Assembly: GCA_964036045.1 (NCBI GenBank)
Contig: OZ038378.1
Location: 171,802,001-171,866,000, forward strand
Reading direction: 5' to 3'
Source: Eutreptiella sp. 'Long Island Sound 2002'
Taxonomy: Eukaryota; Protista; Euglenida
Length of the DNA: 64,000 nt
Shown here: in pieces, positions 3,631-26,547 of the stretch
Layout: each line of letters starts with the position of its first letter
Position numbering within the stretch: position 1 is the first letter of the stretch
The notes under the pieces: model-generated
What the model was told of the DNA's origin: nothing
The model's database searches: none
The model's input: the letters and a program-made list of their open reading frames with translations, nothing else
Position numbers and translations under genes: made by a program

Positions 3631-3933
3631 GCCCCCCCCTTGCCCCACTGTCCTGTGTGTGAGCGACACCAGGCGGCAGCGCAAGAAGCGAAAGCTCAGG
3701 AAAAGCAGGAACCCAGGACAGGGTCGATAATGACAGAACCTGTAGCCCCTGCATTGTGGTGCGGATATCTCAGAGGTTTCAAGCCCAACAATGCATGCAT
3801 GTCTGAAATCTGCGTTCTGACGCAGAGCTTTCCGTCACAAGAGCCGCGTCCTGCCGCGGCTTGCAGCAGCACACAGTAGCGATAACGAAGCAGCTGAACT
3901 CCGCGTCGTGTCGCGGAAGAGCATCCGGGCGTA

Positions 3934-4573
3934 ATGCCGCCGGGAAGGACAAGGCAGGAGAAGGGACCACGTCAGCAACGGCATGGCCCTTACACACATC
4001 CAGCCAGCCCCAAAGAAGGTCAAGCCTCAGCAAGAACGCCAACGTGTCAAGGTGCAAGCACTGAGCCAGCTAGACGCTATCGCGAATGAAGGACTGAGGG
4101 CAGTCGAATCAGAGCTGACCACAATGGCCTGGGCCCGCAATCAGCAGATGTGGCTCCGACTGGACCAACCACACAGCACCAGGATGCACTGTGAGATTGT
4201 AGACAATCACGGGGAACCATTGCTGATGAGCAATCAGGAGCTCTACTCGGTGATGGTCCAGATCAATTGGACCCTGAAGACTCAGGCTCTGGCGAACATG
4301 CAGGTCCAGTGGCGACCCAAAAGTGCAGGCACGTGGCATCCGTTCCAGTGGGAGGCGATCCTCCACTGTCCGACGGCAGAGGGACACAGAGCGGTGCCCT
4401 CATCTGTGCGCAGAACTGGAGACTGCATGCATGTGTGGCTGGCAGGCCGAGCGGACCTCTTGAGGCTGTTCCAGAGAACGCTCTTCAGGCAGGCGTACCT
4501 GGTACCCGGGGACGCTGTGCGGTTCCTCTACACGATGCTGAGCACACCCCAGTGCGAAAGGAGATATGCATGA
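3934..4573 (+). pseudogene. LINE accessory ORF3, copy A (2-nt deletion in a CA run near 3990)
   Basis: ATG CCG CCG GGA AGG at 3934 aligns with the ATG at 21556. TACACACATC here versus TACACACACATC in copy B shifts the frame. The remainder closely matches 21556-22197. Confidence 0.75.
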
Positions 4574-4631
4574 CAGGGGATGACACGCAGGGGGGAGTAG
4601 GACAGATTGGAGCAAGTGATGCAGATAACAA

Positions 4632-4735
4632 ATCGTCATAGCCCAGTGGATTAACCGCACCTCTTCTGTCCTGTAGAGGAGGGTTCGAACCCCGGGGGGG
4701 ATAGAGATCCACCGAACGTCCCGAAAACCCCTTTT
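4632..4735 (+). ncRNA. tRNA-derived Pol III cassette inside the LINE 3' region (copy A)
   Basis: A box TAGCCCAGTGG 4639-4649, B box GGTTCGAACCC 4682-4692, TTTT 4732-4735. CTGTCC resembles a tRNA-Asp anticodon loop but the stems are imperfect. Confidence 0.55.
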
Positions 4736-4738
4736 ATG

Positions 4739-4845
<107 letters not shown>

Positions 4846-5723
4846 GCAGTGGGACGCAGTGGGAGAGGAACGGAGAGGAGAGAGAGAGAGAGTGGGGCGC
4901 AATGGAAAAGGAACGGAGAGAAGGAGAGCGAGAGAGAGGGCAGGAGAGCGAGAGAGAGGGCAGGAGAGAGGGCAGGAGAGAGAGAGAGGGAGAGAGTGGG
5001 AGAGAGACCCACATAGCAAGAGTCGGTGGCTAACCGGCGCAACGGGAGGGTGGTGGGTTCGAGCTGACCAGGGTGTATGGGACGCCATGGCAGCACAGAG
5101 CAGTTTAATGGTGAAACAACAGGGCGCCATTGCGCCCCTGGAGCAGAGGCGCGACACGTCGTTACGTGTTGAAAAGCCGAAGCATGACAAGGGCTGCGAG
5201 AATGCGGCCCATGTGACGGTATTGGAAGCGAATGGACATGAAAATGTGGGCGGCTTGTGCACGCATGGTGTGGTGCTGAAAAGGTATGCACCACACACAG
5301 TACAACAATGATCTGTTGAAGTGACCGGCAGCCAGAACTTTTGTTGAAATGTTGAGATGCCTTTGCGCCACCATAGGCGCCTTTGCGCCCCCGAAGTTCG
5401 GGTACGGCACGTCCTCACGTGCCAGAGAACAAGTGCATGACAGGGGCGCGACCTGCAGGGCAAGGGTTAGAGACTAACCGGCACTGTGGGAGGGTGGTGG
5501 GTGCGAGCTGACCTCCGTGTCCAGAGGACCAAAGCCAAAGCACAGTCAGCAACCACCTGGTGTGGTACATAACTGGTCTGCGCTGTAGTGCAGCAAGAAA
5601 AACACTGAACGATGTGGTTATGACCATGCGCCTGTGACACGGGGGCGTATGCGAGCCCAGTTTCCGTTGCCTCATGGCCCTTGCCCCACATCCACCACTT
5701 TGCACCGCCTCTGTTCTCCACAG

Positions 5724-5878: not shown

Positions 5879-6774
5879 TGTAGGAAGATGGGAGTATAGG
5901 AAGATAGGAGGAGGACCAAGGCTCGTTCCGGACCCCACCCGCACAGAACAGAAAAACAGGAAAATTTCGACGCGAACTAGCCTTCCGAGAACTGGTTACG
6001 ACTTTGCATCTTTGCTTTGTGGATGGGTTGTGTTTGCATGCTTGAGGAAGTAAGGGAATTAGCAGGTGCAAGGGACAACAACAAGCATCCAACAGCCAAC
6101 AAAAGCCTAGTTAACAATCCTGTGACAAAAAACAATTTACTAGAATCAGATTTATTGAACCCTAATCGGAACGTTTTTTTGCCGAACGTAAACCTTTTGG
6201 TCGAAAATCCTGTCACGAAAAACAAAAGCTGTGTACCCAAGCCAATGTATTTTCACTAGAATGAAAACCTTTTTACCAAAAGCAAAACCCACATACACAA
6301 ATGTTTTACCAAAATCCTTTTCCCAAAATGAAAACCTTTTTGCCAAAAATAAAACTGTTTTACCAAAACCAAAGCCATTTCACCAAAATGGAACCGCTTT
6401 TACTGAAACAACCTCTTACCCAGTTGCCAGTACCTAATAGCAAAGTCCTTTTAGCAGAATCAAAACCTATTTACCAAAATCAAAAAGTTTTCTCCAAAAT
6501 GAACAAAATTTAACTAATCGCAAAACCAAAGTCATAAAGTGTTTACCAAATCTTTTCACCAAATCCGTTTTTATAAAAAAAACGAAAAAAACAACCTTTT
6601 CACTCCTCGGCCCGCCAGCCCGCCGAGACCCCTGTCGGCGGGCGTGTACACAAGGCAGATTCTGGGGAAAACGACACGCAATTTTTGCAGGTAATTTTGA
6701 AAATATTGTAGGTAGATTTCCTGGTTTTAATGTACCCAAATATGTAGGATGAAGGACCAGCACCGCGGTAACAT

Positions 6775-7767
6775 GTGAGGATCTTCAATAGGCTATGGTG
6801 GTCTGGGACCCTGATGCACTTGTTTTGGGTCAAGTCAAAGATGATGCTGGCGGATGCCTTGTCCAAGTTGAGTGGGACCGACCCGACATCCATTACTCAG
6901 GCTACAATAGACGCTCTTTCTAAGTGGAGATCCCTCATGTCCAATATCCACCAGTTGACCCACATGGGCTCGGCCTGGGTCTGGGCACAAGTCAGCTCCT
7001 TACGGCAGCGCCTGGCCAGTACTGACCTCCGTGCCATAGCCTTTTTCATACATGCTCGTGTCTGCACACGTGAGCCGAGGCCTCTTGGTGTCATGCCCCC
7101 AAAGGGGCAAGATGAAAGGCCTAAGCCTCAACAGGAGAGACAGGGCTTCAAGGTGCTGGCCATACAACGCTTGGCGGAAGTGGAATAGGAGGCATTGGAG
7201 ACGGTGAGGCTGACACTTGAAGAGATCATCTGCATGCGAAATCAAAGAATATGGCTCCGACTACAAATCAACTTGGGAGTAAGAACGACGATGGAGGTGG
7301 TCACGACCAGAGGGGAACCACAGGTGATGCTGAAGCAGGAAATGTACTCGTTGCTCGTTAAGGTGATGTGGACTCTTAAACCGAGAGCATGCGAGAACAT
7401 GCTGGTAAGGTGGATCTGCAAAGACACACTTCACGACTTTGATTGGGAGGTCTCCCTGATTGTTCCCACCCGGGGAGGACGGAGGTAAGTTTCAGTTTCC
7501 ACCAGCCAAGCCACGGGGTCACACCACATCTGGTTTTCGGGAATGCCCAGCATCCTGCGCGTTTCGAACAAGTGCTGTTCCGATAGTTTGATCCAATTTC
7601 GGGCGATGCAAGTAGTCTATACGTATTTGATTACACCATGCAAGGGCAAGACCTACTCTATTGCGAGTGTTGTGGAGGACGAGAGTTGCATACTCCTGGG
7701 ATGTACTTTCCTCATGAGTCATGGGTCTCGGGCAGGATACATACCCGTGTCTTTACACGGGTACTGA
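6775..7767 (+). pseudogene. Fragment of a YR-type retroelement: RNase H C-terminus followed in frame by a diverged homologue of LINE ORF3
   Basis: LFWVKSKMMLADALSKL resembles the DIRS/Ngaro/VIPER RNase H end. From 7093, MPP..KPQQERQGFKV..RNQRIWLRL..GEP..QEMYS..TLK..NMLVRW..HDFDWE..HIWFSG aligns with 21556-22197. In-frame stops at 7186-7188 and 7486-7488. Confidence 0.6.
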
Positions 7768-8426: not shown

Positions 8427-9061
8427 CACCTTGAAAACTCATGGCTACAAACGTGTTTCCATTGACGAGGTGGGCCGCCATGAAATAGGGTGTGTGGAAA
8501 CTTGTTTCCGTTGAGAGGTGCGCCACCTCTTGTAGATGTGTTTTGCTTCCACATCGTCTAGAACCAAACACCTATGGTAAGTTCACATGCACCCCGGGGA
8601 GGGTGTGTAGTTTCAGACACTTCATCCTGTGTGTTGCTTGCACGGCTAGTGTTTTGGGAGAGGTTGGGGATGAGTGGTGTCTGCTTTTAGACACATTTGT
8701 GCTGAAGCATACCTCCGAAACTGTTGATATGAAGTTCTGTTTGGTTCTAGACAATTTGAGAAAACAAACGATTCACTTTTTCCTTTCGAGCTGTTGCGCA
8801 TCATAGATCAATGTACAGGTACGTGGTACAGTGTGGTGAAGGGGGAGGAAAAACGACAAAAAGGTCAAAAATTGCATTTTGTGCACACGGTTTGCCAACA
8901 ATCACGGTGTGTGGAACCATGCAGAAACTGATTTAGTGTTAATTCTTGTTCTTCACTAGCCTCCATGGGCACTGAGACCTCATGGATGTCCCGGGGGGGC
9001 GGCCGGGCCCGGTCCTTGTATGCGACACCCCCCACCCCCCCCCCCCCCCCTCCCCCCCCCG

Positions 9062-9086
9062 TTGCCCAGTTTCCGTTGCCTCATGG
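9062..9086 (+). mobile_element. 25-bp extreme 3' fragment of the LINE with TSD CCCCCCCG
   Basis: GCCCAGTTTCCGTTGCCTCATGG is identical to the LINE 3' terminus. CCCCCCCG flanks it at 9054-9061 and 9087-9094. Confidence 0.6.
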
Positions 9087-9307
9087 CCCCCCCGGGTTTT
9101 GAAAGATAGTGGTGCCGGGTCGGCCACCAACAAGTGTCCCTAGAGAAAATTGTCCGGCGCCGAAGGCGCCAATTTTTTTTTCATACTATGTGTTTATACT
9201 CAAAACACTCAAAATTTTGTAGAGAATTCATATTTGTGTTAAACAACAAGAAAAAATTTTGACCTGAAGGAGGGCTACAGGAGGGCTGCACACCCTAACA
9301 GCAACTC

Positions 9308-10475
9308 TAGCCCTAATCAAGACTGAATATTGGGACCGAGCTGGTGGGGGAGGGAACATCAGCTATGACTGATGAGGGACATCAAGAATGATTCACACAC
9401 ATTGATGGCTCTTGACAAAGTGAAATCAGCTTGCACGTGAACCCCATCACCACGAGGCCCACTTTCAAGGCTTTTTGGACTTCTGAGGGGCCAAAATGCC
9501 CCAAAATGGGCTCAAAATGGGCCCATTTCACCCGTTTGTGCACCCCAAATGGTCTAGGATGAGTTTTGGAAAAATGCGTTTTTGACCCATTTTTACCCAA
9601 TTTTGGTCCCAAAACATCGCATCTTCAAGGCATTTTGGTATTTTCGGAGGACCAAAATGGGCCACCACAAGCTCAAAACAGTCCAAAAACACTTGTTTTA
9701 GCGTCGCACATGGTCTAGGATCATTTTTGAGAAAAGTCATATTTTTGCCCCTATTGGACCCTGTTGACCCATATGGGCACCCACTTGTTTGGGCTCGAGC
9801 TTGCAGCTTGCCGCAGCCTGGTGGGCCTAGGTATTGGGGTCCAGGCGTCCGTTTGGGCAATTCTGAGGGGTGGAAACCACAAAAAGTGGGGGTTGCGGGT
9901 GGCGTAGGTGCCCTCGGAATCGCATTTGGAGGCATGTAGCCAAAGATATGGCCTATTCTTGGTTTGTGGCTGTCAGCATTTGGAGCTTCTAGGGGCCTTT
10001 TTGGGCCGTTTCCGGGACATATCATGGAGTTACAGGGCCGCAAAGAGCTCGTTGACACGGGGAAGTCAAGCCGCACGTGGAGTGTACCCACCGTTTCCCT
10101 TCATTTGGCCGTTTTGAATGTGTTCCAGGGCTTTTTTGGCCCAAAAATGGCTGTTTTTGGCCCTAAACTGCAGTTTTTGAAACTGAGGTCTGCCACTTGC
10201 GAATCCCGTTCCCGGCCGCCACCGTTGAGTTTTCTGCTCAAACTTTGTGTGATTGTACTTCACACCCATAGGTATCATCCACCAAAATTTCACCCGAATC
10301 TGAAGCACCACGACGGAGTTGTGATTTTTAGCCATTTCGCGCGTGCTGCTTCCTGCTTGCTTGCTTGCTTGCTTGCTTGCTGCTGCTAAACCTGGTAGGT
10401 CCACCCTAGACACTAAAAAGGGTTATAAAACCAAGACTGGTTCCACCAGCTCGGTGACCCTAGCCCTAACCCTAA
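9308..10475 (+). mobile_element. Non-coding element flanked by CCCTAA-like repeats, with 13-bp subterminal inverted repeats and an internal (GCTT)n tract (copy 1)
   Basis: ACCGAGCTGGTGG at 9335-9347 versus CCACCAGCTCGGT at 10443-10455. CTAGCCCTAA blocks at both ends. Homologous to 15812-17466. Confidence 0.7.
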
Positions 10476-12914: not shown

Positions 12915-13075
12915 GATGACCATGCGCCTGTGACACAGGGGCGTATGCGAGCCCAGTATCTGTTGCCTCATGCCCCCCCCCCCCCCCAGATGGGGAAACA
13001 TTGAACTGAGTGTGGTGATGACCATGCGCCTGTGACACGGGGGCGTATGCGAGCCCAGTATCCGTTGCCTCATGG
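12915..13075 (+). mobile_element. Two tandem short 3'-end fragments of a sister LINE subfamily with an 11-bp TSD
   Basis: GACCATGCGCCTGTGACAC..GCGTATGCGAGCCCAGTATC.GTTGCCTCATG occurs twice. CCCATATGGGG is at 12904-12914 and 13076-13086. Confidence 0.7.
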
Positions 13076-13959
13076 CCCATATGGGGAACCGTCACTTTGA
13101 TTTTCCTTTGACAAGGGGTTGTTGTGTATTGTTCTTTGTGTGCTAGTCCCCAATATCACAGTTGACTCCTTTTCTCGTACAGACACAAATGTATGCCATA
13201 GGCGATCATGTATGGTACCACTCTCGTAGTAGGGGTGGCCCATTGTTGGCAACTGTCATTGGGCCCTCATCCTCTGGTCTCGAGTTCCTCCACATTCAAT
13301 ACTGGGGTAATGTCAACGAACAAGAGCCAAGAACCTCCTGAACACTGCAGTGGCTACGATCCCAGCTTTGAGGGGCCGAGGGGAGCGTTTGAAAACCTCG
13401 AATGCGACTCAACGCTATGGACCATAGTGCAGAGTTATCTCGGTTGGAAGCTATACGGGCATCATTTGCGGTATCACCTGGATCTCTTGACCACTCTTCA
13501 CAACAAGCACTCGCAGCTACACCACAAGCACCTGCACCCACACGTCAGGCACCTGTACCAAAATTTGTACCCAAGCGTGGTCTGAAACGGACCCTCCAAA
13601 CATTTATGGACCAGCTTTTGAAGCCCAATACCCCTCCCTTGCCATAGATGGCACAAATTTTGATTCAGATTCAGATTCTTATGATGACTATGACGGTGAG
13701 GCATTGCCGATGCCTTCCTCCTCTGATTGTGACTCACAAGCAGAGGACAATGATGATGAGCCTGAGGTGAGGGTGGTATGGGCAAAGGCTGCCCGTGGGG
13801 TTTGGGGACAAGGTCATGTGTTCGAGGGTAAATTGTGCTTGAACCGTGATATTTGCAAGGAGGATCGTATTCCCGAGCAGGTGAAGGTACCTGTAAGGTC
13901 CAAGCCAGCCAAGCCTGCTGCTAAAAGGGCTGCCAAGAAGGCTGCGGCGTCGAGCACCA

Positions 13960-15836: not shown

Positions 15837-17271
15837 ATATTGGGACCGAGCTGGTGGGGGATGGAACACCGTCTAGGAGACTTCAACGACAAATGAGGTA
15901 CACACTGGAAAGTGGATGAGAGCGGGTCAAAGGGGGCTCAAAACGAGCTATATTCATCCATTTGGGCACCACAACTGGACTGGGATCATTTTTGGAAAAT
16001 CATGGTTTTGACCCATTTTTGAGCCATTTGTGATCCCAAATTGGCCCATTTTCAAGGCCATTTCTGCCTTGAGAGGGGCCAAAGTTGCTCAACATGGGCT
16101 CAAAATGGGCTCATTCCACTTGTTTGTGCACCCCAAATAGTCCAAAAGTATCTTTGGAAAAAAAACCATCTTTGATGCATTTTTTGACTAACTTTTGGTC
16201 CCAAATGGGCATTTTGTGACTCTAGAATGGCCAAAATGGCTTGCACTGGGCTCAAAATGGGCTCATTTCACTTACTTGTGCACCCCAAATGTTCTAGGAT
16301 CATTTTTGGAAAAACACATTTTTGACCCATTGTTGACCCATTTTTGGTCACAAAACAACCCATTTTCAAGGCATTTTGTGACTTTGGAGGGGCCAACATG
16401 GCTTGCAATGGCTCAAAATGGGCTCATTTCACTTGTTTAGGCACCCCAAATGGTCTAGGATCATTTTTGGTGAAACACATTTTTGACCCATTTGTGACCC
16501 ATTTTTTGTCCTAAAACAACCCATTTTCAAGGCATTTTGGGATTTGAGGAGGGCCATAACGGGCTAACACGAGCTCAAAACTCGCCAAAAACACTTGTTT
16601 TGGCATTCCAAGTGCTCCAGGATCATTTTTGAAAAAGAGTCATTTTTTTTACACCCGGTGGGTCTTGTTGACCCATCTTGGCACCCACCTCTTTGGGCTA
16701 CCTCTTGCAGCTTGCTGCAGCCCACTAGGTACTGGGGTCTAGGTGTTGGTAAGGGCAATTTTGAGGGGTGGAACCCACCAAAAGTGGGTGGTTGCGGGTG
16801 GAATAGGTGCGCTCGAAATCGCGTTTTGAGCCGCGTAGCCCAAGATATGGTCTGTTTTTGGTTTGGGGCTGTTGGCCGCCAATGTGCACAAATTCTTGGG
16901 CTTTTGGGGGTCTTTTGGGGGCGGTTCGCAGACATATTGTGGAGTTCGAGGGCCCTAGAGGGCTCTTTGGCATGGGGAAGTCTAGCTGCATGTGTAGAGT
17001 AGCCACTGTTTCCCTTCATTTGGCCATTTTCAGCAGGTGCTAGGGCGGTTTTGGGCAAAAAACAAGCTGATTTTAGCCCGAAATTGCACATTTTGAAATG
17101 GAGCCCGTTCCCGGCCGCCACCGTTGAGGTTCTGTCTCATACTTTGTGTGGTTGTCCCTCACACCCACAGGTAGTATCCACCAAAATTTTGGTCGAATCC
17201 GAAGCACCACAAGGGACCTGTGATTTTTGCCCATTTTTCGCGTGCTTGCTGCTTGCTTGTTGCTTGCTTGC

Positions 17272-17302
<31 letters not shown>

Positions 17303-17466
17303 GCTTGCTGCTTGCTTGCTTGCTGCTTGCTGCTTGCTTGCTTGCTGCTTGCCAAACCTGTTAGGTCCACCCTAGACACTACTGAGGGTTATAAAACCAA
17401 GACTAGTTCCACCTGCTCGGTGACCTTAGCCCTAACCCTAGCCGTCGCCCTAACCCTACGCTAGGG
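15812..17466 (+). mobile_element. Telomere-repeat-flanked non-coding element, copy 3, with ~125-bp internal tandem subrepeats and (GCTT)n
   Basis: Subterminal IR at 15845-15857 and 17409-17421 (1 mismatch). Subrepeats ~15930-16640, microsatellite ~17243-17350, terminal hairpin CCCTA-CGC-TAGGG at ~17454-17466. Confidence 0.7.
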
Positions 17467-17747: not shown

Positions 17748-20700
17748 TTGTATCGGTTAATGCGGGAGTTGCAGGAGCGAAAGAAACTTCAACAGCTGGT
17801 ATCCAGGACAGGCTCGGCGATACGGGGGGCAAAGACGGTGGCAAAAGAGTTGGTGGACCATTGGGACAAAGTGTCCACACCGACGGGATCCACCGAAGAA
17901 GATTGTGTGGCCTATCTGAAGTCGTTAGGAGTGGAACAGCGGCTGCGCAAGGCAGGTCGACTTCTTTTCAAGCAACCATCCCTGGACATTGTTCATGAAG
18001 GCCTTAAGAGGCTGAACAGCAACAGCTCCCCTGGATTGGATGGTTTCTTGGCAAAATTCTTCAAGAGGTTCTCGGACATCTTCGAACCGCAAATGTATGA
18101 CTCAATGAAACATTTCCTCGAAGTGGGCAAAATGCCGGAGACATGGACCTCGGGAGTGGTGACAATGATTCCCAAGACGAAGGCGATGCAAACACCAGAT
18201 TCGCTCCGACCAATTGCACTGCAAACTACAAGGCAGAAGTGGCTCACCAACATCCTCCTGATCCAGTTAGAGGATGTACTTCTCCACTGTATCCCGTCAC
18301 AGCAAACAGGTTTCCTTCGACACAGAAGCATACTTCAGCATGTCTATGGGTCACGGGCACTCTGGGATGGCCTAAGTGAAGGAGCGGCGTTATCAGTGGA
18401 CTTCAGAAATGCCTTCCCCACGATGTCTCACGAGATGGTGTCGGCAGCTCTGGGTCTAATGTGCATACCATTCTTGTATATCCGTCTGATTCTACACCTT
18501 TTGCGAGCTCCGTATCTATACTCCGTTGGAAAAGGATACGTCCCAGGCGTATACCACCACCCGAGGGCAGGCACACGCCAGGGGGATCCACTCTCCCCTG
18601 CGCTGGTCTCCCTGGTGGCATCCTTTGTGATTTTCCCACTACAAGACCTGGGTCCAGTACTGACTGTCATGATGTATGCAGATGACCTCATCATTTTCTT
18701 TGATGGAAGAGCCAACCCACAGCTGTTGAAAAGGGTATGGGAAGTGGTTTCACGTTTCGGACAGTTTTCGGGGCTGAAGGTCAACCTGAATAAAACGGCA
18801 GCGATAGTTCGCAATTGTGGGGGAATGGAGTGGGCGAGGTGCTTTCGGGACATTGGAGTGGATGTCAAAAACTTCGTCAAGTATCTGGGTGTACGCTTGG
18901 GGAACATTCGGCACCAACAAGACGACCAAGGATGGGGGCTGACGATGGAGCAGGCCTTCGCACCAGCACTGCAAGAGGCCTTCCGTCGCGCAAGGGTGGT
19001 ATCCACGTTGCAACTGTCCATGAACGAACGAGCATTCATGCTGACATCATGGATTCTGCCGGTTGTGGCATGGGTATCCAAGGCATATTACGCCCCAGTC
19101 TCGGTGGTCGGACAACTGAAGTTGGTGTATCACGTGACTATGGGTACCAACAGCTGGGGAATCACCTTACCAATCCTCTCATGTCCAAGAACGCAAGGGG
19201 GACTGGCACTACCAGAACCAGAACTGTTTCTTATGCACCAGGCGGCGGCTCCGTTCGTCAGCCTGTTGGGAGACCCTCACAAATTCCCTGACAAGGCAGT
19301 GGAGACCTTCTATGCATGGGCAACAGCCATAGGGTTCACACCATCCAAGGACAACCTTCCATATATTCAACTGGGCATGGTCCGAACGGCCGATCTTACA
19401 TTTCTGGGATGGTCGGCGAAGGCACATTCCAACATTCAGCGAGTGGCCCCGCAGGTGGCCCCCCCGGCAAACCGGGACCGCCTGCCGTTGTGGCACTCTG
19501 TGTATTTCCGAAATGAGTTCCGCTGCTCCTACTACAACACGAAATTGATCCGGCAGGGGGTGCTGACGTGGGGTCAATTCCAAAGCTTGGAGGACGCAAG
19601 ATTGTTCAATGCACTGCCTCGGACATGGAAAGGGGTCTACAATCATGGCGGACGACTCCTCAACAAAGTCATGTCACAAGGGGGGTTTGATACCCCCGCA
19701 GTCCATACCCAAAACTGGACCAGGGCATGGCTGCTCCAGTTCTACGCCTCTCAGCCAGGGGTCCGCGACCCGCAAACACCGGAGGTATGGGTACAGCTGG
19801 CACAGGCACAGCTACCACCGAGGGCTCAAGACTTTGCGCGAAAGGCGCTGTGGCACAAACTGACCGTACATGCAAGAGTATACAAGAGGTCAGGCACTGA
19901 CAAGTGCCCGGTTTGCTCACAACAGGAGACGATCAAACACGCGATGGTCGAATGCCCCATGTTCAAAGCAGCAGCGGCGGTTATACAGCACTACTATGGC
20001 CAGGTGACAACTGATAACGGGACATCCACAGTTCGAGATATGATGGAGTCCGACGACCAAGAATGGTTGCTGAAAACGAACCAAGGCTGGGCGATGTGGT
20101 CAGCAAGAAGTGCCCACTGGCGATATCGATGCGAAGTCAGAAGGCAGGAGCGTCGCCGGTGTTCGTGTCATACCTTACAACATGGCTAAGGAAGCTATGT
20201 GAGTGGGTGGGATTTTACACAGGGGAGCACAGGGAACAATGGAAAGGATTTCAAAAATCGCTGGAACAACTTCGAGACACCGGAGTGCAGCCACGACAAG
20301 GGGAAGTGCAAGTACATGGGGGACTGAATGCGTGGTGGCAAACACACACGGAATGCTTCACCCAAGAAAAGTCAGCCGACAATCAAAGTTGGCAAAGGGC
20401 AACGGAGTCACGCCCGAAGCGCCCGAGGCAGGCAGGCCCGGGAGTGCTACAAGGAGTGCAAGAACTGATTGCAGAACTGGTGGAGCAGGGCTACAGGATA
20501 GTGTACAGTGATGGATCGTCGAAGCGACTGGGCCTCAAGGACATGCGCAGGGCCGGGGGATTTGGCGTGTTCGCGGCGGAAGACGACCAAGGACCAGAGG
20601 TGCGCTTCTGTGGCTACGTACCAACACATTACAGGCAAACAAACAACGGAGCAGAGCTTTGGGCAGCCGTGGAAGCCTTACAGGGTTTCTGGGTGCCAAA

Positions 20701-21319
20701 ACTGGCAATCCTCACCGACTCACAATACCTGCAGCTGGGAGCGACTGGCAGGGCCCAACACTGGAAGTCAAAGGGATGGACAACCACATCTGGAAAACTG
20801 CAAGTCCACGTCCCAGTCTGGGAAATGCTGCTCCAGGAAATGGCGACGCCGGGAAGAGAAGTCAGGTGGGAACATGTCCCAGCACATGTCAACGTGCAGG
20901 GAAATGAGATGGCGAATGGATTGGCCATGGAAGGCATGTGTTCAAGCCCACTGTGGTCACAGCATGTTGCACCAAAATCATCATCTGGGTCAGAGTCCAC
21001 GGTAGGTTTGAGGGGAGGGTGGGGATCAGAGTCAGAGGGCACAAGGGCACTCTGGTCGTCCCTGGGTATAGTACCCATGGACAGTGATGAACTGACAGGG
21101 GAAGCATCCGGGGAGCCAGCGCCACGTGGGATGGGACCGTACTCCTCAAGCAATACAGAAAGTGAGGAAATGAGACCAGGACACACACACCAGGGAGTGC
21201 TGTCGAGTGCACTGTCAGCAGCAGACACACTGTCCTTCAGCACTGATGTGAGTGACACCAGGCGACAGCGCAAGAAGCGAAGGCTCAGGAAACGCAGGAA
21301 CCCAGGACAGGGTCGATAA
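17748..21319 (+). pseudogene. LINE ORF2 remnant: reverse transcriptase + zf-RVT + ribonuclease H, one frameshift near 20145-20150
   Basis: RT motifs SSPGLDGF, RPIAL, VDFRNAF, GTRQGDPLSP, MYADD, GLKVNLNKT, KYLGV, GGLAL. Zinc finger CPVC..TIKHAMVEC. RNase H motifs YSDGSS, TNNGAEL, ILTDSQY, WKSKGW, HVPAH..GNEMANGLA. Confidence 0.92.
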
Positions 21320-21555
21320 TGCCAGAGCCAGAAGCCCTTGCACAATGGAACAGACATCCCACAGGCACCAAGCACAGCAATGCATGCCTGAAACACCTGT
21401 GTTCTGACGCAGAGTCTGCATCACATGAGCTGCGTTTTGTCGCAGTAGAGCTTGCAACACATGGGCTGCGTTCTGCCGCAGTGAGCAGCAGCACGCAAAG
21501 GAGCACGCCAAGCAGCTGAACGCCGCGTCCTGTCGCGGAAAGGCACCCAGGCGTT

Positions 21556-22197
21556 ATGCCGTCTGGGAGGACACAGCAGGAGAAGGGATCTCACCAGCAG
21601 CGGTATGGCCCATACACACACATCCAGCCAGCCCCAAAGAAGGTCAAGCCTCAGCAAGAACGCCAGCGTTTCAAGGTGCAAGCACTGAGTCAGCTGGACG
21701 CCATTGCGAACGAAGGACTGCAAGCAGTTGAAGCAGAACTGACCACAATGGCCTGGGCCCGCAATCAGCAGATCTGGCTCCGACTGGACCAACCACATGG
21801 CACCAGGATGCACTGTGAGATTGTGGACAACCATGGGGAACCACTGCAGATGAGCAATCAGGAGCTCTACTCGGTGATGGTCCAGATCAACCGGACCCTG
21901 AAGACCCAGGCTCTGGCGAACATGCAGGTCCAGTGGCGACCCAAAAGTGCAGGCATGTGGCACCCGTTCCAGTGGGAGGCGATCCTCCACTGTCCGACGG
22001 CAGAAGGACACAGAGCGGTGCCCTCCTCGGTAAGCAGAGTTGGCGATTGCATGCATGTGTGGCTGGCAGGCCGAGCGGACCTCTTGCGATTGTTCCAAAG
22101 AACGCTCTTCAGGCAGGCGGACCTGGTACCCGGGGACGCTGTGCGGTTCCTCTACACACTGCTGAACACACCCCCATGCGAAAGAAGATACGCATGA
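21556..22197 (+). CDS. LINE accessory ORF3, 213 aa, unknown function
   Basis: Intact ORF downstream of the RNase H ORF. Versus copy A, about 15 synonymous and 7 non-synonymous codon differences over ~99 codons (counted by hand). A diverged homologue lies at 7093-7767. Confidence 0.8.
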   Translation: MPSGRTQQEKGSHQQRYGPYTHIQPAPKKVKPQQERQRFKVQALSQLDAIANEGLQAVEAELTTMAWARNQQIWLRLDQPHGTRMHCEIVDNHGEPLQMSNQELYSVMVQINRTLKTQALANMQVQWRPKSAGMWHPFQWEAILHCPTAEGHRAVPSSVSRVGDCMHVWLAGRADLLRLFQRTLFRQADLVPGDAVRFLYTLLNTPPCERRYA

Positions 22198-22257
22198 CAG
22201 GGGGTGATAAAAAGGAGAAGAAGAGAGGAGCGCATGGTGCCATGGTGCAGATAACCC

Positions 22258-22363
22258 ATCGTCGTGGCCCAGTGGATACACCACACCTCTTCTGTCCCGT
22301 GGAGGATGGTTCGAACCCCGGGGGGGATAGAGATGCACCGAACAACCCGAACCCCCCTTTTTT
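22258..22363 (+). ncRNA. tRNA-derived Pol III cassette inside the LINE 3' region (copy B)
   Basis: A box TGGCCCAGTGG 22265-22275, B box GGTTCGAACCC 22308-22318, T6 at 22358-22363. Confidence 0.6.
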
Positions 22364-23909
22364 GGGCGCGAGAGGGAGGGCGCGAGAGAGAGGGAGAGAG
22401 AAACAGAGAGAGAGAGAGAGAGAGAGAGGGTAGAGCGCAGTGGGAAAGGAACAGAGAGGTGCAACAGGAGAGAAAGAGAAGGGGAGAGCAAGAGAGAATG
22501 GAAGGGAGAGAGTAGGAGAGAGACCCACAGAGCGAGAGACCGGGGCTAACCGGCGCAAAGGGAGGTGGTGGGTTCGAGCTGACCAGGGTTCGAGCTGATC
22601 AGGGTGGGTTCGAGCTGACCAAGGTAAAAGGGACGCCACGGCGGCACGGAACAGCCGAGAAATGTCAAGAAATGAAAAAGCAGGGCGCCGTAGCGCCCCT
22701 GAGCCACTGGCTCGACACGTTGTCACGTGTTGAACAGCCGAAGCAAGACTGGGGCGGCGAGAGTGCGGCCCAAGTGAGGATGACGGAAGCAAGTAGGCAT
22801 GAATGTGTAGGCGGCATGCGCATGCATGGTGGGGAGCTGAAAAGGTATGCGCCACACGCCACACAGCGATGATTTGTTGAATTGCCTGACAGACGGAGCA
22901 CATACCGAGACGCCTTTGCGCCATCCAAGGCGCCATTGCGCCCCTGAGGATTGAGTATGACACGTCCTCACGAGCCAGAATGCAAGTGCATGACAGGGTC
23001 ACGACCTGCAGGGCAAGGGTTAGAGACTAAGCGGCACTGTGGGTGGGTGGTGGGTGCGAGCTGACCTAAATGTCCAGAGGACCAGTGCCTATGCACAGTC
23101 AGCAACCACCTGGTGTGGTACAGAACTGGTCTACGCTGCAGTGCAGCAAGCAAAACACTGAACAATGTGGTTATGACCATGCGCCTGTGACACGGGGGCG
23201 TATGCGAGCCCAGTTTCCGTTGCCTCATGGCCCCCCACCATCGCCCCTCCTCCCAAGGGGGCCTCCGGCCAACAGTTAATTGTGGGGGTAGTTGGCGTCC
23301 AGGACCGAGGAGTCGCCCCCCCCCCCCTGGAGTATAAGCCAGTGGTACAATGAAGGTAAGTTGTTTTGGCCAACAAAACACAGCCTAGTGAGCTGACCAT
23401 GAATGAACTACACAAATGAAACGGGTGCCACACGCTGAAGCATACATGCGCACATCCCATGTGTGGCACTACCAGCACACACACCCTGTATACACTGCGA
23501 TTGATGTTGTAGATGCTCGTTCCCTGAACAACATGCACATAACCTCCACACTGATCGATTGCCTGATAGCCGTGGCAGACCGCCTGCGCTACTGCGTGAA
23601 GGGTCAGCACATGTTATGCCAGCACAATGCATGGACCTCTGGTCTGCTCAGTTTCTGAGTACACCTGTGCTGCACATAAATGGACCTTCAGCTTTCCGGA
23701 GTTCTCCCGAGTACACTCAATGGAACCTTGAGCGTCAAGAACTCAAAAAAAAAAAAAGAATAAACTACACAAATGAAGGAGACTGTACATGTGTTCTTGT
23801 GCATGAGTAGTCAGACACAAATGCATGGTGGTGCTCCAGGGAGAACATATGGATCTGCATATGTGGAGTGCTCTGTGATCTGCTGTCTGCCTTTTACGTA
23901 CCACCATGC

Positions 23910-23928: not shown

Positions 23929-26547
23929 ATGAGTCAGTCCGCGAGCGAACGAGCCCTTCAAGCAGAACTTGAAGCACTTAAGCAAGAACTGGAAGTAAAG
24001 AAAAAAGAAGCACAGATTGCATCCCTTGAAGCACAGAAGTACAAGGCAGCAGCTCAACGGGCACCTCAACAGCCATCAGCTGCAGAGCGCCGGCCCTCTG
24101 TTGTGGCACCACCTTCCAAAAAACCACGCGTGGAAAACCCCACTCAAAGAGCCCCTGCTCATGGGGGATTCGCTGGAGCCACTGCTGCCACACGCCCGAC
24201 TGCGCCTCGACCACAAGCGACGGTGACCAGTCATCTTGGGTTTGCCCCCACACATCCCACTGCCCCCACACGCGGGGCTGTCCCCATGCGCGGGGCTGTC
24301 CCCACACGCGGGGCTGGCCCCAAAGGCGGGGCTGTCCCCACACGTGGGGCTGGCCCCAAAGGCGGGACTGGCCCCAAAGGCGGGGCTGCCCCCAAAGGCG
24401 GGGCTGCCCCCAAAGGCGGGGCTGCCCCCAAAGGCGGGGCTGCCCCCAAAGGCGGGGCTGCCCCCAAAGGCGGGGCTGCCCCCAAAGGCGGGGCTGCCCC
24501 CACACGTCCTGGGGTTGCCCCCCCACATCCTGGAGTTGCTCCCGAAGCCTCTTTTGTCTCTCACCAAGCCCCAATTGCACTACACATGAACCCCATTGAG
24601 AGGGGTTCCCAGCGGCTGGCACAAATGAAGGAGAAGCTTTCCAGGGGAGTGCCCGCCAAGGGCCTGCTCACGCAATTCAGCGGGGATGTTCTTTACGACC
24701 TGGCGGACCCCCTTGTGCCATCAAATGCGGTGATCGCTGACTGCATGGAGAGTATGTACGACATGTTGTATGACCGTATTATGCGCGACGTGGATGCAGG
24801 ACACCGCCACTCATGGGAGCCCATTGCAAGCGAGATCAAGCTGTTTTTTGAGGTCGGGTTTCGTTGTCGCGGAAAGTTTCCAGCCGGCCCAGCACAGAAC
24901 AAGATCTTCGTGAATTATGTGGAAATGTTGAACCTTTTCTTGACCGCTCCGGAGGAACTCCCAGCCTCCGAAACACCAGAGGGGCTGTGGCTGCGACCCA
25001 CAGTCGCAGCTGCGGCTGGGAGCCAGGGGGAGGCTTCGTTGCGTCTGCAGAACTCCCTGATTCCTGACATGCCGGCACGCAATGATGTGCTTCTCGATTT
25101 GTACTGGGATCTGGAATTGGATATCTGGCGCCGACCCGCGGGACACAGGCCCCACCGTGGGGAGGTCATGGACCGCAAAAAGAAGAGCACCCTCCGAATG
25201 GCAGCCACCATCATTCAAAACTGTGATTACGCAAGCCACATGTTTGACGAGTCCAAGCCCAAGTCACCTCCCGTCGTTGTCCTGTGCCACTCTAAGGGCA
25301 TGGTCCTCAAGCTGGCAGACCTGCTCAACTATATGGGACGATATGAGTATGGAATGGGGTACCGTGGGGCTGAGGCAGCATACCGGGACACCGAGGCCAT
25401 CAGTGACGTGCCGGTGACCATCTTGGTGTGCACACCAGGCAGGCTGCTGCATGACGTAAAGGAGGGTGCCATTTCGCTCCACGCTCTGGATATGTTGGTG
25501 ATGTCTTGCCAAATGATGCCTGTCCCAAAAGAGTACATGGCGCTCCGGAGCATGTGCCCTGAAACTGTGCGGACGTTGATGTTCTCGTCCATACGGCATA
25601 CCCCCAAGAATATTCTCCAGACAGCCGAAGAAATGTTGACCCATGAACCGCAGATTGCAAGCTGGGATTATGAAGAACAACAGCCGACTGTGGTGGTGGC
25701 GCCCTTCGTTCCAGGAGTGACCACCTTGCCTTCCAAGAATCTCCCCCCAGCCCCGTTCTCTACCACAGGAAAGGGCAAGGGCAAAGGCAAAGGAGAGTCC
25801 CTCTTGCCTGACAATTTTGCCCCCACAGGAAAGGGCGCAGGAAAAGGCTCAATGGCGGGGTTCAAGAGTGACTTCAATGGGATGGGCCTGCATGGTGAAA
25901 TCATGCCTATCATGAAGAAGCACAAGTTGACCATTGCCACCCCACTGCAAAAGACAGCCATCCCTAGCATGATGACTGGCCGCAGCTGCCTGTTTATCAG
26001 CCCTCCTCAAATGGGGACTGCGCTGGCCTTTGTCCTTCCAACGGTGCACTTGATGATGAACTACCCCCCTGGTGGGATGTCGCCCCGGGTGTTGGTGATG
26101 GCTGAGCGTCGGGAGGATGTGGACTGCATTGTCGCAGAATACCTGCGATTCACTCAAGCTCTACCCAGATACAACATGGCACCGGAGGGATTGCACTCCA
26201 CCCGTTTGACAGACTACGACACGCCCGTCAACACTAGTGCCTCGGTGATTGTAGGCACCCCACACAAACTGGCCAACAGCATCCTGAAACCCGATAGTAC
26301 CACGCCCATTGATGTATCACTGGTGGATGTCCTGATCTTGCAGGGGCTTGGTACTGTCTGCAAGAATTTGGTGCGACCTGAGTGTAAGGATGAGAATTTT
26401 ATCTCCCATGTCTACCACGCAATTGTGAACGCAAAGAAACAAGCCCCACAGGTTGTGGCTTTTTCAAAGGATTTTTCTGCTGATGCAGTGCAGTCGATTG
26501 TCGTGGGTGTAGTCCCGGATATCGAAGTTCTGAATATTGAAGGCTAG
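23929..26547 (+). CDS. Intronless 872-aa DEAD-box pseudo-helicase-like protein (coiled coil, PKGGAA repeats, two degenerate RecA1 domains)
   Basis: Long uninterrupted ORF. Domain 1 has PVVVLCHS, ILVCTPGRLL, DMLVMSCQM, TLMFSS. Domain 2 has a Q-motif (F.GMGL..TPLQKTAIP), SPPQMGTALAF, RVLVMAERRE, VIVGTPHKL, DVLILQGL. The start at MSQSAS is preferred over 23773. Confidence 0.8.
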   Translation: MSQSASERALQAELEALKQELEVKKKEAQIASLEAQKYKAAAQRAPQQPSAAERRPSVVAPPSKKPRVENPTQRAPAHGGFAGATAATRPTAPRPQATVTSHLGFAPTHPTAPTRGAVPMRGAVPTRGAGPKGGAVPTRGAGPKGGTGPKGGAAPKGGAAPKGGAAPKGGAAPKGGAAPKGGAAPKGGAAPTRPGVAPPHPGVAPEASFVSHQAPIALHMNPIERGSQRLAQMKEKLSRGVPAKGLLTQFSGDVLYDLADPLVPSNAVIADCMESMYDMLYDRIMRDVDAGHRHSWEPIASEIKLFFEVGFRCRGKFPAGPAQNKIFVNYVEMLNLFLTAPEELPASETPEGLWLRPTVAAAAGSQGEASLRLQNSLIPDMPARNDVLLDLYWDLELDIWRRPAGHRPHRGEVMDRKKKSTLRMAATIIQNCDYASHMFDESKPKSPPVVVLCHSKGMVLKLADLLNYMGRYEYGMGYRGAEAAYRDTEAISDVPVTILVCTPGRLLHDVKEGAISLHALDMLVMSCQMMPVPKEYMALRSMCPETVRTLMFSSIRHTPKNILQTAEEMLTHEPQIASWDYEEQQPTVVVAPFVPGVTTLPSKNLPPAPFSTTGKGKGKGKGESLLPDNFAPTGKGAGKGSMAGFKSDFNGMGLHGEIMPIMKKHKLTIATPLQKTAIPSMMTGRSCLFISPPQMGTALAFVLPTVHLMMNYPPGGMSPRVLVMAERREDVDCIVAEYLRFTQALPRYNMAPEGLHSTRLTDYDTPVNTSASVIVGTPHKLANSILKPDSTTPIDVSLVDVLILQGLGTVCKNLVRPECKDENFISHVYHAIVNAKKQAPQVVAFSKDFSADAVQSIVVGVVPDIEVLNIEG
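24265..24498 (+). repeat. 13 x 18-bp coding minisatellite (P[TK][RG]GA[VAG])
   Basis: Unit CCCAAAGGCGGGGCTGCC, with 7 perfect copies at 24373-24498. Confidence 0.95.

Follow-up and report, generated by a model that had tools for sequence, protein, structure and literature searches.

The 64,000-nt stretch of the Eutreptiella sp. 'Long Island Sound 2002' genome analyzed here (contig OZ038378.1, positions 171,802,001 to 171,866,000; hereafter the window, with coordinates counted from its first nucleotide) contains pieces of a long interspersed nuclear element (LINE) family that carries a third open reading frame (ORF), ORF3, behind the reverse transcriptase (RT) and RNase H parts of ORF2. The piece referred to as copy B occupies 17748–23233 on the forward strand, as do all of its parts, and is ordered as RT, zf-RVT, RNase H, spacer, ORF3, and 3' tail, without the endonuclease part. 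The RT part of ORF2 (17748–20189) matches Pfam RVT_1 (E 7e-23) and zf-RVT (E 2e-7), and the RNase H part (20063–21319, with its stop codon at 21317–21319) matches Pfam RNase_H (E 3e-22). The first-pass annotation of this DNA had placed an ORF of 213 amino acids about 240 bp behind the RT-RNase H stop. This ORF is indeed present at 21556–22197, with an ATG start and a stop codon at 22195–22197, and is separated from RNase H by a spacer of 236 nt (21320–21555). The 3' tail (22198–23233) includes a tRNA-like piece, a GA-rich repeat, and a conserved end, and lacks poly(A). Copy B itself is not an intact LINE. It begins at 17748, directly behind a run of 14 C residues and at a point that matches residue ~328 of ORF2 in a related locus (L001), to which it is 92% identical (L001 3223–8648). 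Moreover, its RT and RNase H parts overlap (20063–20189) in different frames. Copy B is thus a dead, 5'-truncated copy of an L1-like LINE.

In a second copy (copy A; 3649–5680, forward strand), the truncation point falls in the last part of the RNase H region, and ORF3 and the tail are retained; in a self-comparison of the window, 21247–23233 is repeated at 3658–5680. ORF3 does recur in copy A (3934–4573) as previously described, but it is not intact there. A 2-bp deletion near 3991 causes a frameshift after ~20 codons, such that codons 1–22 (3934–3999) and the remainder (3992–4570) are in different frames, and the gene is open only from an internal ATG at 3983 (196 amino acids). Copy A is flanked by a 12-bp target-site duplication (CCCTTGCCCCAC) at 3637–3648 and 5678–5689, the first three C of which overlap the terminal CCC of the element. 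These are the only two matches to this sequence in the window, where 0.05 are expected. Because copy A has this flanking duplication, the earlier proposal that ORF3 moves as part of the retroposed unit holds.

Relatives were traced at loci L001 to L012, all from one ENA assembly (ERZ25074135). The order common to this family is a putative endonuclease, RT, zf-RVT, RNase H, a structured spacer of ~220–240 nt, ORF3, and 3' tail. The RVT_1 matches of family members have E-values from 7e-23 to 3e-25. In searches against PDB, the RT of the L001 copy matches human L1 ORF2p (E 1e-18) ahead of R2 (E 1e-11), and the RNase H is of the cellular RNase H1/HI type (RNase H1, E 2e-14). In L001, RT and RNase H share one frame with a single stop codon between them (5285–5287), and 413 residues precede the RT match with no Pfam hit in that part. 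The endonuclease is represented by a weak, sub-threshold match to Exo_endo_phos in L004 (5690–6190; E 1.2e-4; 22.3 bits, with the threshold at 24.5 bits). The 5' ends vary among copies, lying at 17748 in copy B, at 3649 in copy A, and at about reference position 6561 in L003, and the 3' end is common. A fusion of ORF3 with ORF2 was considered and ruled out, as the frames differ between copies and stop codons intervene.

L004 is a diverged, nearly full-length copy with 76% nucleotide identity. It consists of a spliced-leader-like 5' end (4082), ~1.6 kb of open frames, the weak endonuclease match, RT, zf-RVT, RNase H, spacer, ORF3, and a tail of 410 nt. The spliced-leader-like sequence (4082–4105) is situated where the element appears to begin and has three mismatches to the euglenid leader; the leader sequence used as the query matches two of the fetched loci. 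The apparent stump of a second leader follows the one at 4082–4105. The region from 4082 to 5690 is a candidate part of this element.

One line of evidence that ORF3 is a gene is its substitution pattern. Among seven ORF3 copies (A, B, and those of five loci; 21 pairs), pairwise dN/dS is 0.11–0.32 by the NG86 method and 0.07–0.39 by the YN00 method, with dS ranging from 0.09 to 1.2, and Fisher tests of synonymous versus non-synonymous changes give p = 1e-18 to 1e-43. Between copy B and L004, there are 47, 25, and 91 changes at codon positions 1, 2, and 3, respectively. Purifying selection had been proposed from a count of 15 synonymous versus 7 non-synonymous differences between copies A and B. 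A comparison of this pair, which was not picked for openness, over 193 codons points in the same direction more strongly, with 12, 6, and 29 differences at the three codon positions, dN of 0.035, dS of 0.289, and dN/dS of 0.12. The ratios in the copies compared are thus about 0.1–0.3 and not near 1. Between L001 and L004, dN/dS is 0.11 for ORF3, 0.09 for RT, and 0.14 for RNase H, such that ORF3 is constrained as strongly as the two enzyme parts of ORF2. The corresponding dS values (1.27, 1.47, and 1.26, respectively) are the same in ORF3 and ORF2, and therefore both have travelled together since the subfamilies split. Within ORF3, dN/dS is 0.46 in the N-terminal tail, 0.15 in the helix, and 0.11 in the domain that follows. 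Among pairs, the ratio is highest (0.32) in the closest pair and lowest in deep pairs. This pattern is expected if copies decay after insertion and selection acts on the active lineage.

Other properties of the reading frame are in line with this pattern. Frame +1 is without stop codons in all nine ORF3 copies, and each of the other frames is stopped in most of them. An antisense ORF of 356 amino acids over ORF3 (21421–22491, reverse strand) remains open in the two youngest copies, which belong to the youngest subfamily, and all others carry two to five stop codons in it; because it is closed in the older copies, it is a by-product of the sense codon pattern. The start (MPP/MPS) and the end (...ERRYA) of the protein are the same across subfamilies that are 73–97% identical. 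In a large protein collection, ORF3 has 115 matches, all from ENA, and the clusters at 90% identity have 108, 225, and 205 members. In one of these clusters, 13 of the 15 listed members are exactly 213 amino acids long and are located on different contigs. Intact ORF3 copies number in the hundreds.

The association of ORF3 with the rest of the element was also examined from the opposite side, starting from RNase H alone. Three RNase H proteins, which are 88%, 74%, and 66% identical to the query, were picked (L010 to L012), and their contigs are outside those listed for ORF3 hits. All three have ORF3 170–220 nt behind RNase H, followed by the 3'-end motif of the family. One of these ORF3 copies is open except that its ATG has become ATA, another has a single stop codon, and that of the oldest locus has several frameshifts, as do the other parts of this old element. 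When copy B, L001, and L004 are counted as well, ORF3 is present in 6/6 elements that keep RNase H. The first-pass annotation had suggested an element-encoded accessory protein of an undescribed family. With dN/dS of 0.1–0.3, the presence of ORF3 behind RNase H in every such element, including the three picked by RNase H alone, and the lack of any described domain, this suggestion is supported, and we are highly confident that ORF3 is a real, selected, element-encoded third gene of an L1-like LINE family.

The gene is also older than the subfamilies compared above. A profile search of 1.84 billion representative proteins gave 100 hits, among which are full-length relatives at 37–47% identity (e.g., P0118 and P0123). 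Relatives occur in at least three further lineages of the genome. In one of these (L007), a LINE-type RNase H precedes the ORF3 relative at a distance of ~240 nt; the other two are represented by truncated copies only. One lineage, family C, has a decayed copy in the window (7093–7659, forward strand; stop codons at 7186–7188 and 7486–7488) that is 39% identical to ORF3 over 183 amino acids (tblastn E 5e-33) and is recovered by the profile too. Family C is also found at L008 and L009, and all three copies are truncated just upstream of ORF3. The diverged lineages lack the 3'-end motif of the B family. Because relatives at 37–47% identity occur in separate lineages, ORF3 predates the split of several of them. 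An open frame upstream of the family C ORF3 in the window (6772–6930) reads ...WVKSKMMLADALSK... and resembles the end of an RNase H of the long-terminal-repeat (LTR)/DIRS type. This ADALSK-like peptide is not common to L008 and L009, which align only from about 6944. Family C may belong to another retroelement class.

Outside this genome, no relative was found by sequence or structure in Pfam, PDB, ESM Atlas, BFVD, or JGI metagenomes. All ten traced ORF3 clusters are from ENA only, and although the ORF3 profile hit 84 patterns in JGI metagenomes, none of these was a relative. A Pfam search with ORF3 and 24 family members gave no hit at E up to 1; the best E-value of the profile against PDB sequences was 0.056, which is not meaningful; and the feature search of the ESM Atlas returned scores of 0.76–0.83, which are at noise level, with TM no higher than 0.43 in the shape search. 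With Foldseek, no structure in PDB or BFVD reached E 1e-3 (best E 8e-3). Thus, the earlier remark that the protein has no recognizable motif stands, as Pfam, PDB, and Foldseek yielded no described domain. The possibility that ORF3 is a duplicate of a 5' ORF of the element was rejected, as the profile has no hit elsewhere in ~236 kb.

The ORF3 protein (ORF3p) is 24.5 kDa in size with an isoelectric point (pI) of 9.5. Residues 1–31 are basic (pI 10.3), predicted to be disordered, and weakly constrained; the PAPKKVKP sequence previously described as resembling a nuclear localization signal is found at residues 25–32. In the predicted model, a long helix (~32–70) is followed by an alpha/beta domain (~71–200), with the domain region extending to residue 213. 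Motifs recurring across lineages are RNQ..W.RL, GEP..M..QELYS, W113, H136.[FY].WE, and GDA..[FLV][LV]YT. H136 is invariant in all 21 ORF3 sequences from all lineages and is the sole invariant polar residue; apart from it, Cys and His residues are not conserved between lineages. In copy B, the nearly invariant W113 is replaced by R and K134 by M, and the RNA-library contigs described below carry the consensus W113 and K134 (places 21892 and 21956). A regular-expression scan of 24 members for zinc-finger motifs found no C2H2, CCHC, or conserved CxxC pattern, and no catalytic-looking motif is conserved in the family. Likewise, no membrane segment was found, as the maximum Kyte-Doolittle value over 19 residues (0.71) is well below that of a membrane segment.

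The AlphaFold model depends on the diversity of the alignment. With a diverse alignment, the model reached a predicted local confidence (pLDDT) of 79.8 and a predicted template-modeling score (pTM) of 0.65. With 14 close relatives only, the pLDDT was 50 and the model was unusable. An exhaustive structure aligner, applied to residues 73–200, placed the KA1 domain of SAD-B first (Z 8.0, rmsd 2.7 Å, 94 of 105 residues), followed among KA1-type chains by the METTL16 VCR (Z 6.9) and Chk1 (Z 6.8), and also by AMPK, MARK, and TUT1, down to Z 5.9 and 5.1. About a dozen such chains are within the top 50 fold matches, at 7–14% identity. DcrB (Z 6.8–7.7), BamC, and the NRD of RnlA tie with these matches, and Z of 7–8 is the usual best score of this aligner for models lacking a true match. 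No member of the family has a Pfam KA1 match. On this model, the ORF3p domain is probably a two-layer alpha/beta sandwich of a common kind, for which the KA1 likeness may serve as a lead only. The KA1 domains of METTL16 and TUT1 bind the stem-loop of U6 snRNA (PMC7229813).

The spacer between RNase H and ORF3 contains two to four short hairpins per copy, each with a 5-bp G+C stem (CUGCG/CGCAG or CCGCG/CGCGG) and a U-rich loop of 6 nt (UYCUGN). These hairpins are located at 21397–21412, 21430–21445, 21466–21481, and 21523–21538 in copy B, and are also found in copy A (3810–3917), L001 (6843–6984), and L002 to L005. In the copies examined (~236 kb of fetched DNA), the form with the CGC stem occurs only in this spacer; looser matches are found in an unrelated repeat of L004 that is rich in TG, and L003 has a single one. 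From hairpin to hairpin, the outer pair of the stem alternates between U-A and C-G. The hairpin ~33 nt before the ATG of ORF3 is kept in 7/7 copies with G-U wobble changes only, and the ATG is in the loop of a further predicted stem. Covariation within the hairpins is thin, with double changes in 6 of 29 pairs. The 3' halves of the hairpins resemble a pyrimidine stretch followed by AG.

As for the expression of ORF3, neither a dinoflagellate nor a euglenid spliced leader was found in the window or upstream of ORF3 in the seven copies. Since no leader precedes ORF3 in any of these copies, there is no retrocopy evidence for a trans-spliced ORF3 message. The RNA data consisted of Logan assembled contigs from four runs (estuary metatranscriptomes and one with another organism label). 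These contigs cover RT, RNase H, ORF3 (e.g., 21447–22365 in one run), and the tail, and do not show strand or transcript ends. One contig from a run labeled as RNA (X5) starts in C-rich DNA at 21256, near the start of copy A, and jumps from 21386 to the terminal ...TTGCCTCATGGCCC. This contig may represent an internally deleted, short derivative of the element without ORF3.

The 3' end is common to copies A and B, L001, L002, L004, and L005, all of which end in ...CCTCATGGCCC without a run of A. The last ~60 nt, terminating in GGCCC, are almost invariant among subfamilies that are otherwise 24% diverged. This conserved end is found in the window at 23170–23233, 5617–5680, 13015–13078, and 9075–9089, and in L001 at 8588–8647 and 8697–8711; in the RNA-library contigs, differing flanks begin at 23233–23237. 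Tiny 3' fragments of the family are common. Because the ~60-nt end is invariant and lacks poly(A), and because such short 3' fragments are common, the sequence suggests that the RT recognizes a specific 3' end. The insertions in C-rich DNA, such as the C14 run before copy B, would fit RT priming on G/C runs. In a comparison of window positions 22198–23000 with 10655–10910 of L002 and 10655–10870 of L004, the distance from the ORF3 stop codon to the conserved end was found to differ between subfamilies. It is 410–480 nt in the older ones (L002 and L004) and ~1000 nt in the young one (copies B and A and L001), in which the tail has grown from ~450 to ~1000 nt. The added sequence consists of the tRNA-like piece (22258–22363) and the GA-rich repeat (about 22366–22530). 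The former is not a recognizable tRNA, because Rfam and ARAGORN found no match in the window.

The remaining features of the window are minor. A tiny remnant of the 3' end of this LINE family is located at 12996–13078 on the forward strand, and other fragments end at 9089 and 12976. A repeat of ~900 nt that is unrelated to the LINE occurs just upstream of copy B (16503–17440) and again at 9601–10474, with 72% identity between the two, and has telomere-like CCCTAA motifs at its edge. Thirteen tandem units of 18 nt (24206–24538) encode a GAAPKG-like repeat and are located inside an ORF of 924 amino acids with a partial DEAD-box match.

Since ORF3 is under the same kind of selection as the two enzyme parts, the element probably needs ORF3p to propagate. 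The favored explanation for this need is that ORF3p acts as a non-enzymatic cofactor that binds nucleic acids or the ribonucleoprotein (RNP) particle of the element. Of the candidate functions named in the first-pass annotation (anti-silencing, targeting, or RNP factor), all of them speculative, the last is thus tentatively preferred. ORF3p may bind the element RNA, either at the hairpins of the spacer or at the invariant 3' end, or else the cDNA intermediate, and would thereby help ORF2p during target-primed reverse transcription, a task that falls to ORF1p in L1 and to the C-terminal C2-L1Tc chaperone in L1Tc. Translation could occur through reinitiation on the full-length RNA once ORF2 has been read, or on a sub-message produced by spliced-leader trans-splicing. 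This role is favored by the charge of the protein, its layout of tail, helix, and domain, the lack of catalytic signatures, and the weak KA1-like resemblance. It is also favored by the location of ORF3, which separates ORF2 from the RNA end to be recognized by the RT, by the spacer-specific hairpin array adjacent to the gene, and by the precedent of C2-L1Tc, a trypanosome LINE protein part that is discussed below. Several observations weigh against it. Homology searches gave ORF3p no link to RNA. The fold matches appear to reflect a common arrangement, with Z no higher than 8 and KA1 tied with DcrB. The RNA contigs are compatible with DNA carry-over and reveal no separate message, and no leader joint was seen in them. 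In addition, the ~1.6 kb of ORF-bearing 5' sequence in L004 may encode an ORF1-like protein that is already the chaperone of the element, and the invariant H136, together with W140 and E141, could mark an active site. We therefore put forward the cofactor role tentatively, at somewhat less than an even chance; as a compromise between this and the much firmer case for the gene, the explanation as a whole is given about even odds. A more specific version, in which the LINE is a true three-cistron element whose third gene arose within euglenids and encodes a new RNA-binding fold that recognizes the hairpin array upstream of its own ATG, has a rather low probability. If true, such recognition would couple ORF3 translation, RNA packaging, and perhaps trans-splicing of a sub-message in a self-recognition module without known counterpart in LINEs.

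Alternatively, ORF3p may be a counter-defense factor that acts against host silencing or restriction by small RNAs, DNA methylation, or RNA decay. As is often the case for arms-race genes, ORF3 belongs to an orphan, lineage-restricted family found in one genome only. Its hundreds of intact copies, many of them in dead 5'-truncated elements, could act in trans, and the N-terminal tail evolves faster than the rest (dN/dS of 0.46). However, purifying selection on the folded domain is strong and uniform (0.11), none of the pairs tested shows a sign of positive selection, and retention of the gene in lineages that are 37–47% identical suggests a stable, conserved partner. Since no likeness to known suppressors was found either, this explanation is considered unlikely.

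Somewhat less probable still is that ORF3p serves in nuclear import, through PKK.KP, or as a target-site adaptor that tethers the RNP to C-rich targets. The P.PKK.KP sequence resembling a nuclear localization signal is conserved in the B family and, in part, in family C, and C-rich insertion sites are seen before copy B (C14), in the flanks of copy A and L004, and at the loose ends of contigs. However, no part of the protein is less constrained than the one that contains PKK.KP, and in P0118 and P0123 the ORFs as called begin only behind the place where this motif would be expected. In addition, targeting of LINEs is normally achieved by the endonuclease and 3'-end pairing, and the GGCCC end can pair with C/G runs; no DNA-binding fold was recognized in ORF3p. 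As for the possibility that ORF3p is an enzyme of a new fold (a nuclease, a phosphoesterase, or an RNA-modifying enzyme) using H136, W140, and E141, the invariance of H136 in 21/21 sequences within H.[FY].WE is what one would look for. Nevertheless, this is the single invariant polar residue, no enzyme family was found by sequence or fold, and the best fold matches are non-catalytic binding domains, such that an enzymatic role appears improbable.

Transduction of 3' flanking sequence is common in LINEs, and ORF3 is open in many elements without RT, as might be the case if a host gene or gene fragment had been captured at the LINE 3' end or if the family had been domesticated. This scenario is very improbable, as all traced homologs are in a LINE-tail context, with no stand-alone gene or other organism found, ORF3 and ORF2 have the same dS, and dN/dS rises to 0.32 in the closest pair, as expected of decay after insertion. 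Finally, although the surrounding tail does hold conserved non-coding parts, the notion that ORF3 is an open frame arising by chance within a conserved 3' untranslated region (UTR) that encodes no protein is refuted by the excess of third-position changes, dN/dS of 0.1–0.3, protein similarity at 37–47% identity, and the closure of most other frames, and has a negligible chance of being correct.

Taken together, the finding is an ordinary LINE core plus an additional conserved gene from an orphan family, of which related lineages carry diverged versions. LINEs are generally described with one or two genes. Because a third gene has been kept here through dS above 1 at enzyme-like constraint, this minimal toolkit is not universal. 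The euglenid system could show which further functions LINEs may require (e.g., RNP assembly, import, or counter-defense), and also how a downstream cistron is expressed where polycistronic RNA is resolved by spliced-leader trans-splicing. Because it represents a well-supported orphan family and its structure is predicted with confidence, ORF3p is a good target for structural and biochemical work. The family also matters for genome annotation, in which its hundreds of copies would otherwise be called hypothetical host genes.

In the literature covered, with Repbase outside its scope, no LINE was found to have a conserved third ORF behind its RNase H, nor was anything found on the LINE genes of Euglena; extra genes behind pol are described from LTR retrotransposons and Penelope-like elements (PMC5408684; PMC7998251). 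The ORF3 genes of LTR retrotransposons and of the Athena group of Penelope-like elements are env-like or encode a GDSL esterase or a DEDDy exonuclease (PMC5408684). They resemble the present case in being extra genes after pol that are common to different retroelement lineages of one host. However, they have recognizable domains or transmembrane segments, whereas ORF3p, which belongs to a non-LTR element, has neither; among env-like features, no transmembrane segment was found in ORF3p and no match in BFVD. The KA1 domain (of MARK, SAD, and Chk1, and in the METTL16 VCR and TUT1) is the best structural match of ORF3p residues 73–200 in the predicted model, and this is a resemblance of shape only.

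The best functional analogy is C2-L1Tc, a nucleic-acid chaperone encoded 3' of RNase H in the LINE L1Tc of Trypanosoma cruzi (PMC2805920). In both cases, a euglenozoan LINE has an endonuclease (putative in the present family), RT, and RNase H followed by a small, basic, non-enzyme part. However, C2-L1Tc is defined by two C2H2 motifs, whereas ORF3p has none and shows no sequence similarity to it; because these defining motifs are absent, ORF3p is outside the C2-L1Tc family. Moreover, C2-L1Tc is now regarded as the C-terminal portion of the long L1Tc ORF, whereas ORF3 is a separate cistron behind a spacer of ~220–240 nt. The ORF1 proteins of LINEs (those of L1, which have a coiled coil, an RNA recognition motif, and a C-terminal domain, and the esterase-type ones of CR1/L2) are another point of comparison. 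Like them, ORF3p is a small non-RT protein under purifying selection, with basic charge and a long helix followed by a compact alpha/beta domain. In contrast, ORF1 is located 5' of ORF2, whereas ORF3 is 3' of it. No Pfam match to L1 ORF1p/Transposase_22 (its RNA recognition motif or C-terminal domain) was found in 24 members, and no chain of this protein is among the top 50 fold matches.

In its core, the present family resembles L1-clade LINEs with an added RNase H, which occur in plants and other groups and share with it an L1-like RT, zf-RVT, and a cellular-type RNase H. To our knowledge, those elements end in a short 3' UTR after ORF2, whereas the present family has in addition the spacer, the third gene, and a 3' end that is fixed and lacks poly(A). 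In lacking a poly(A) tail, it also differs from L1 itself and resembles those LINEs whose RT recognizes a specific 3' end.

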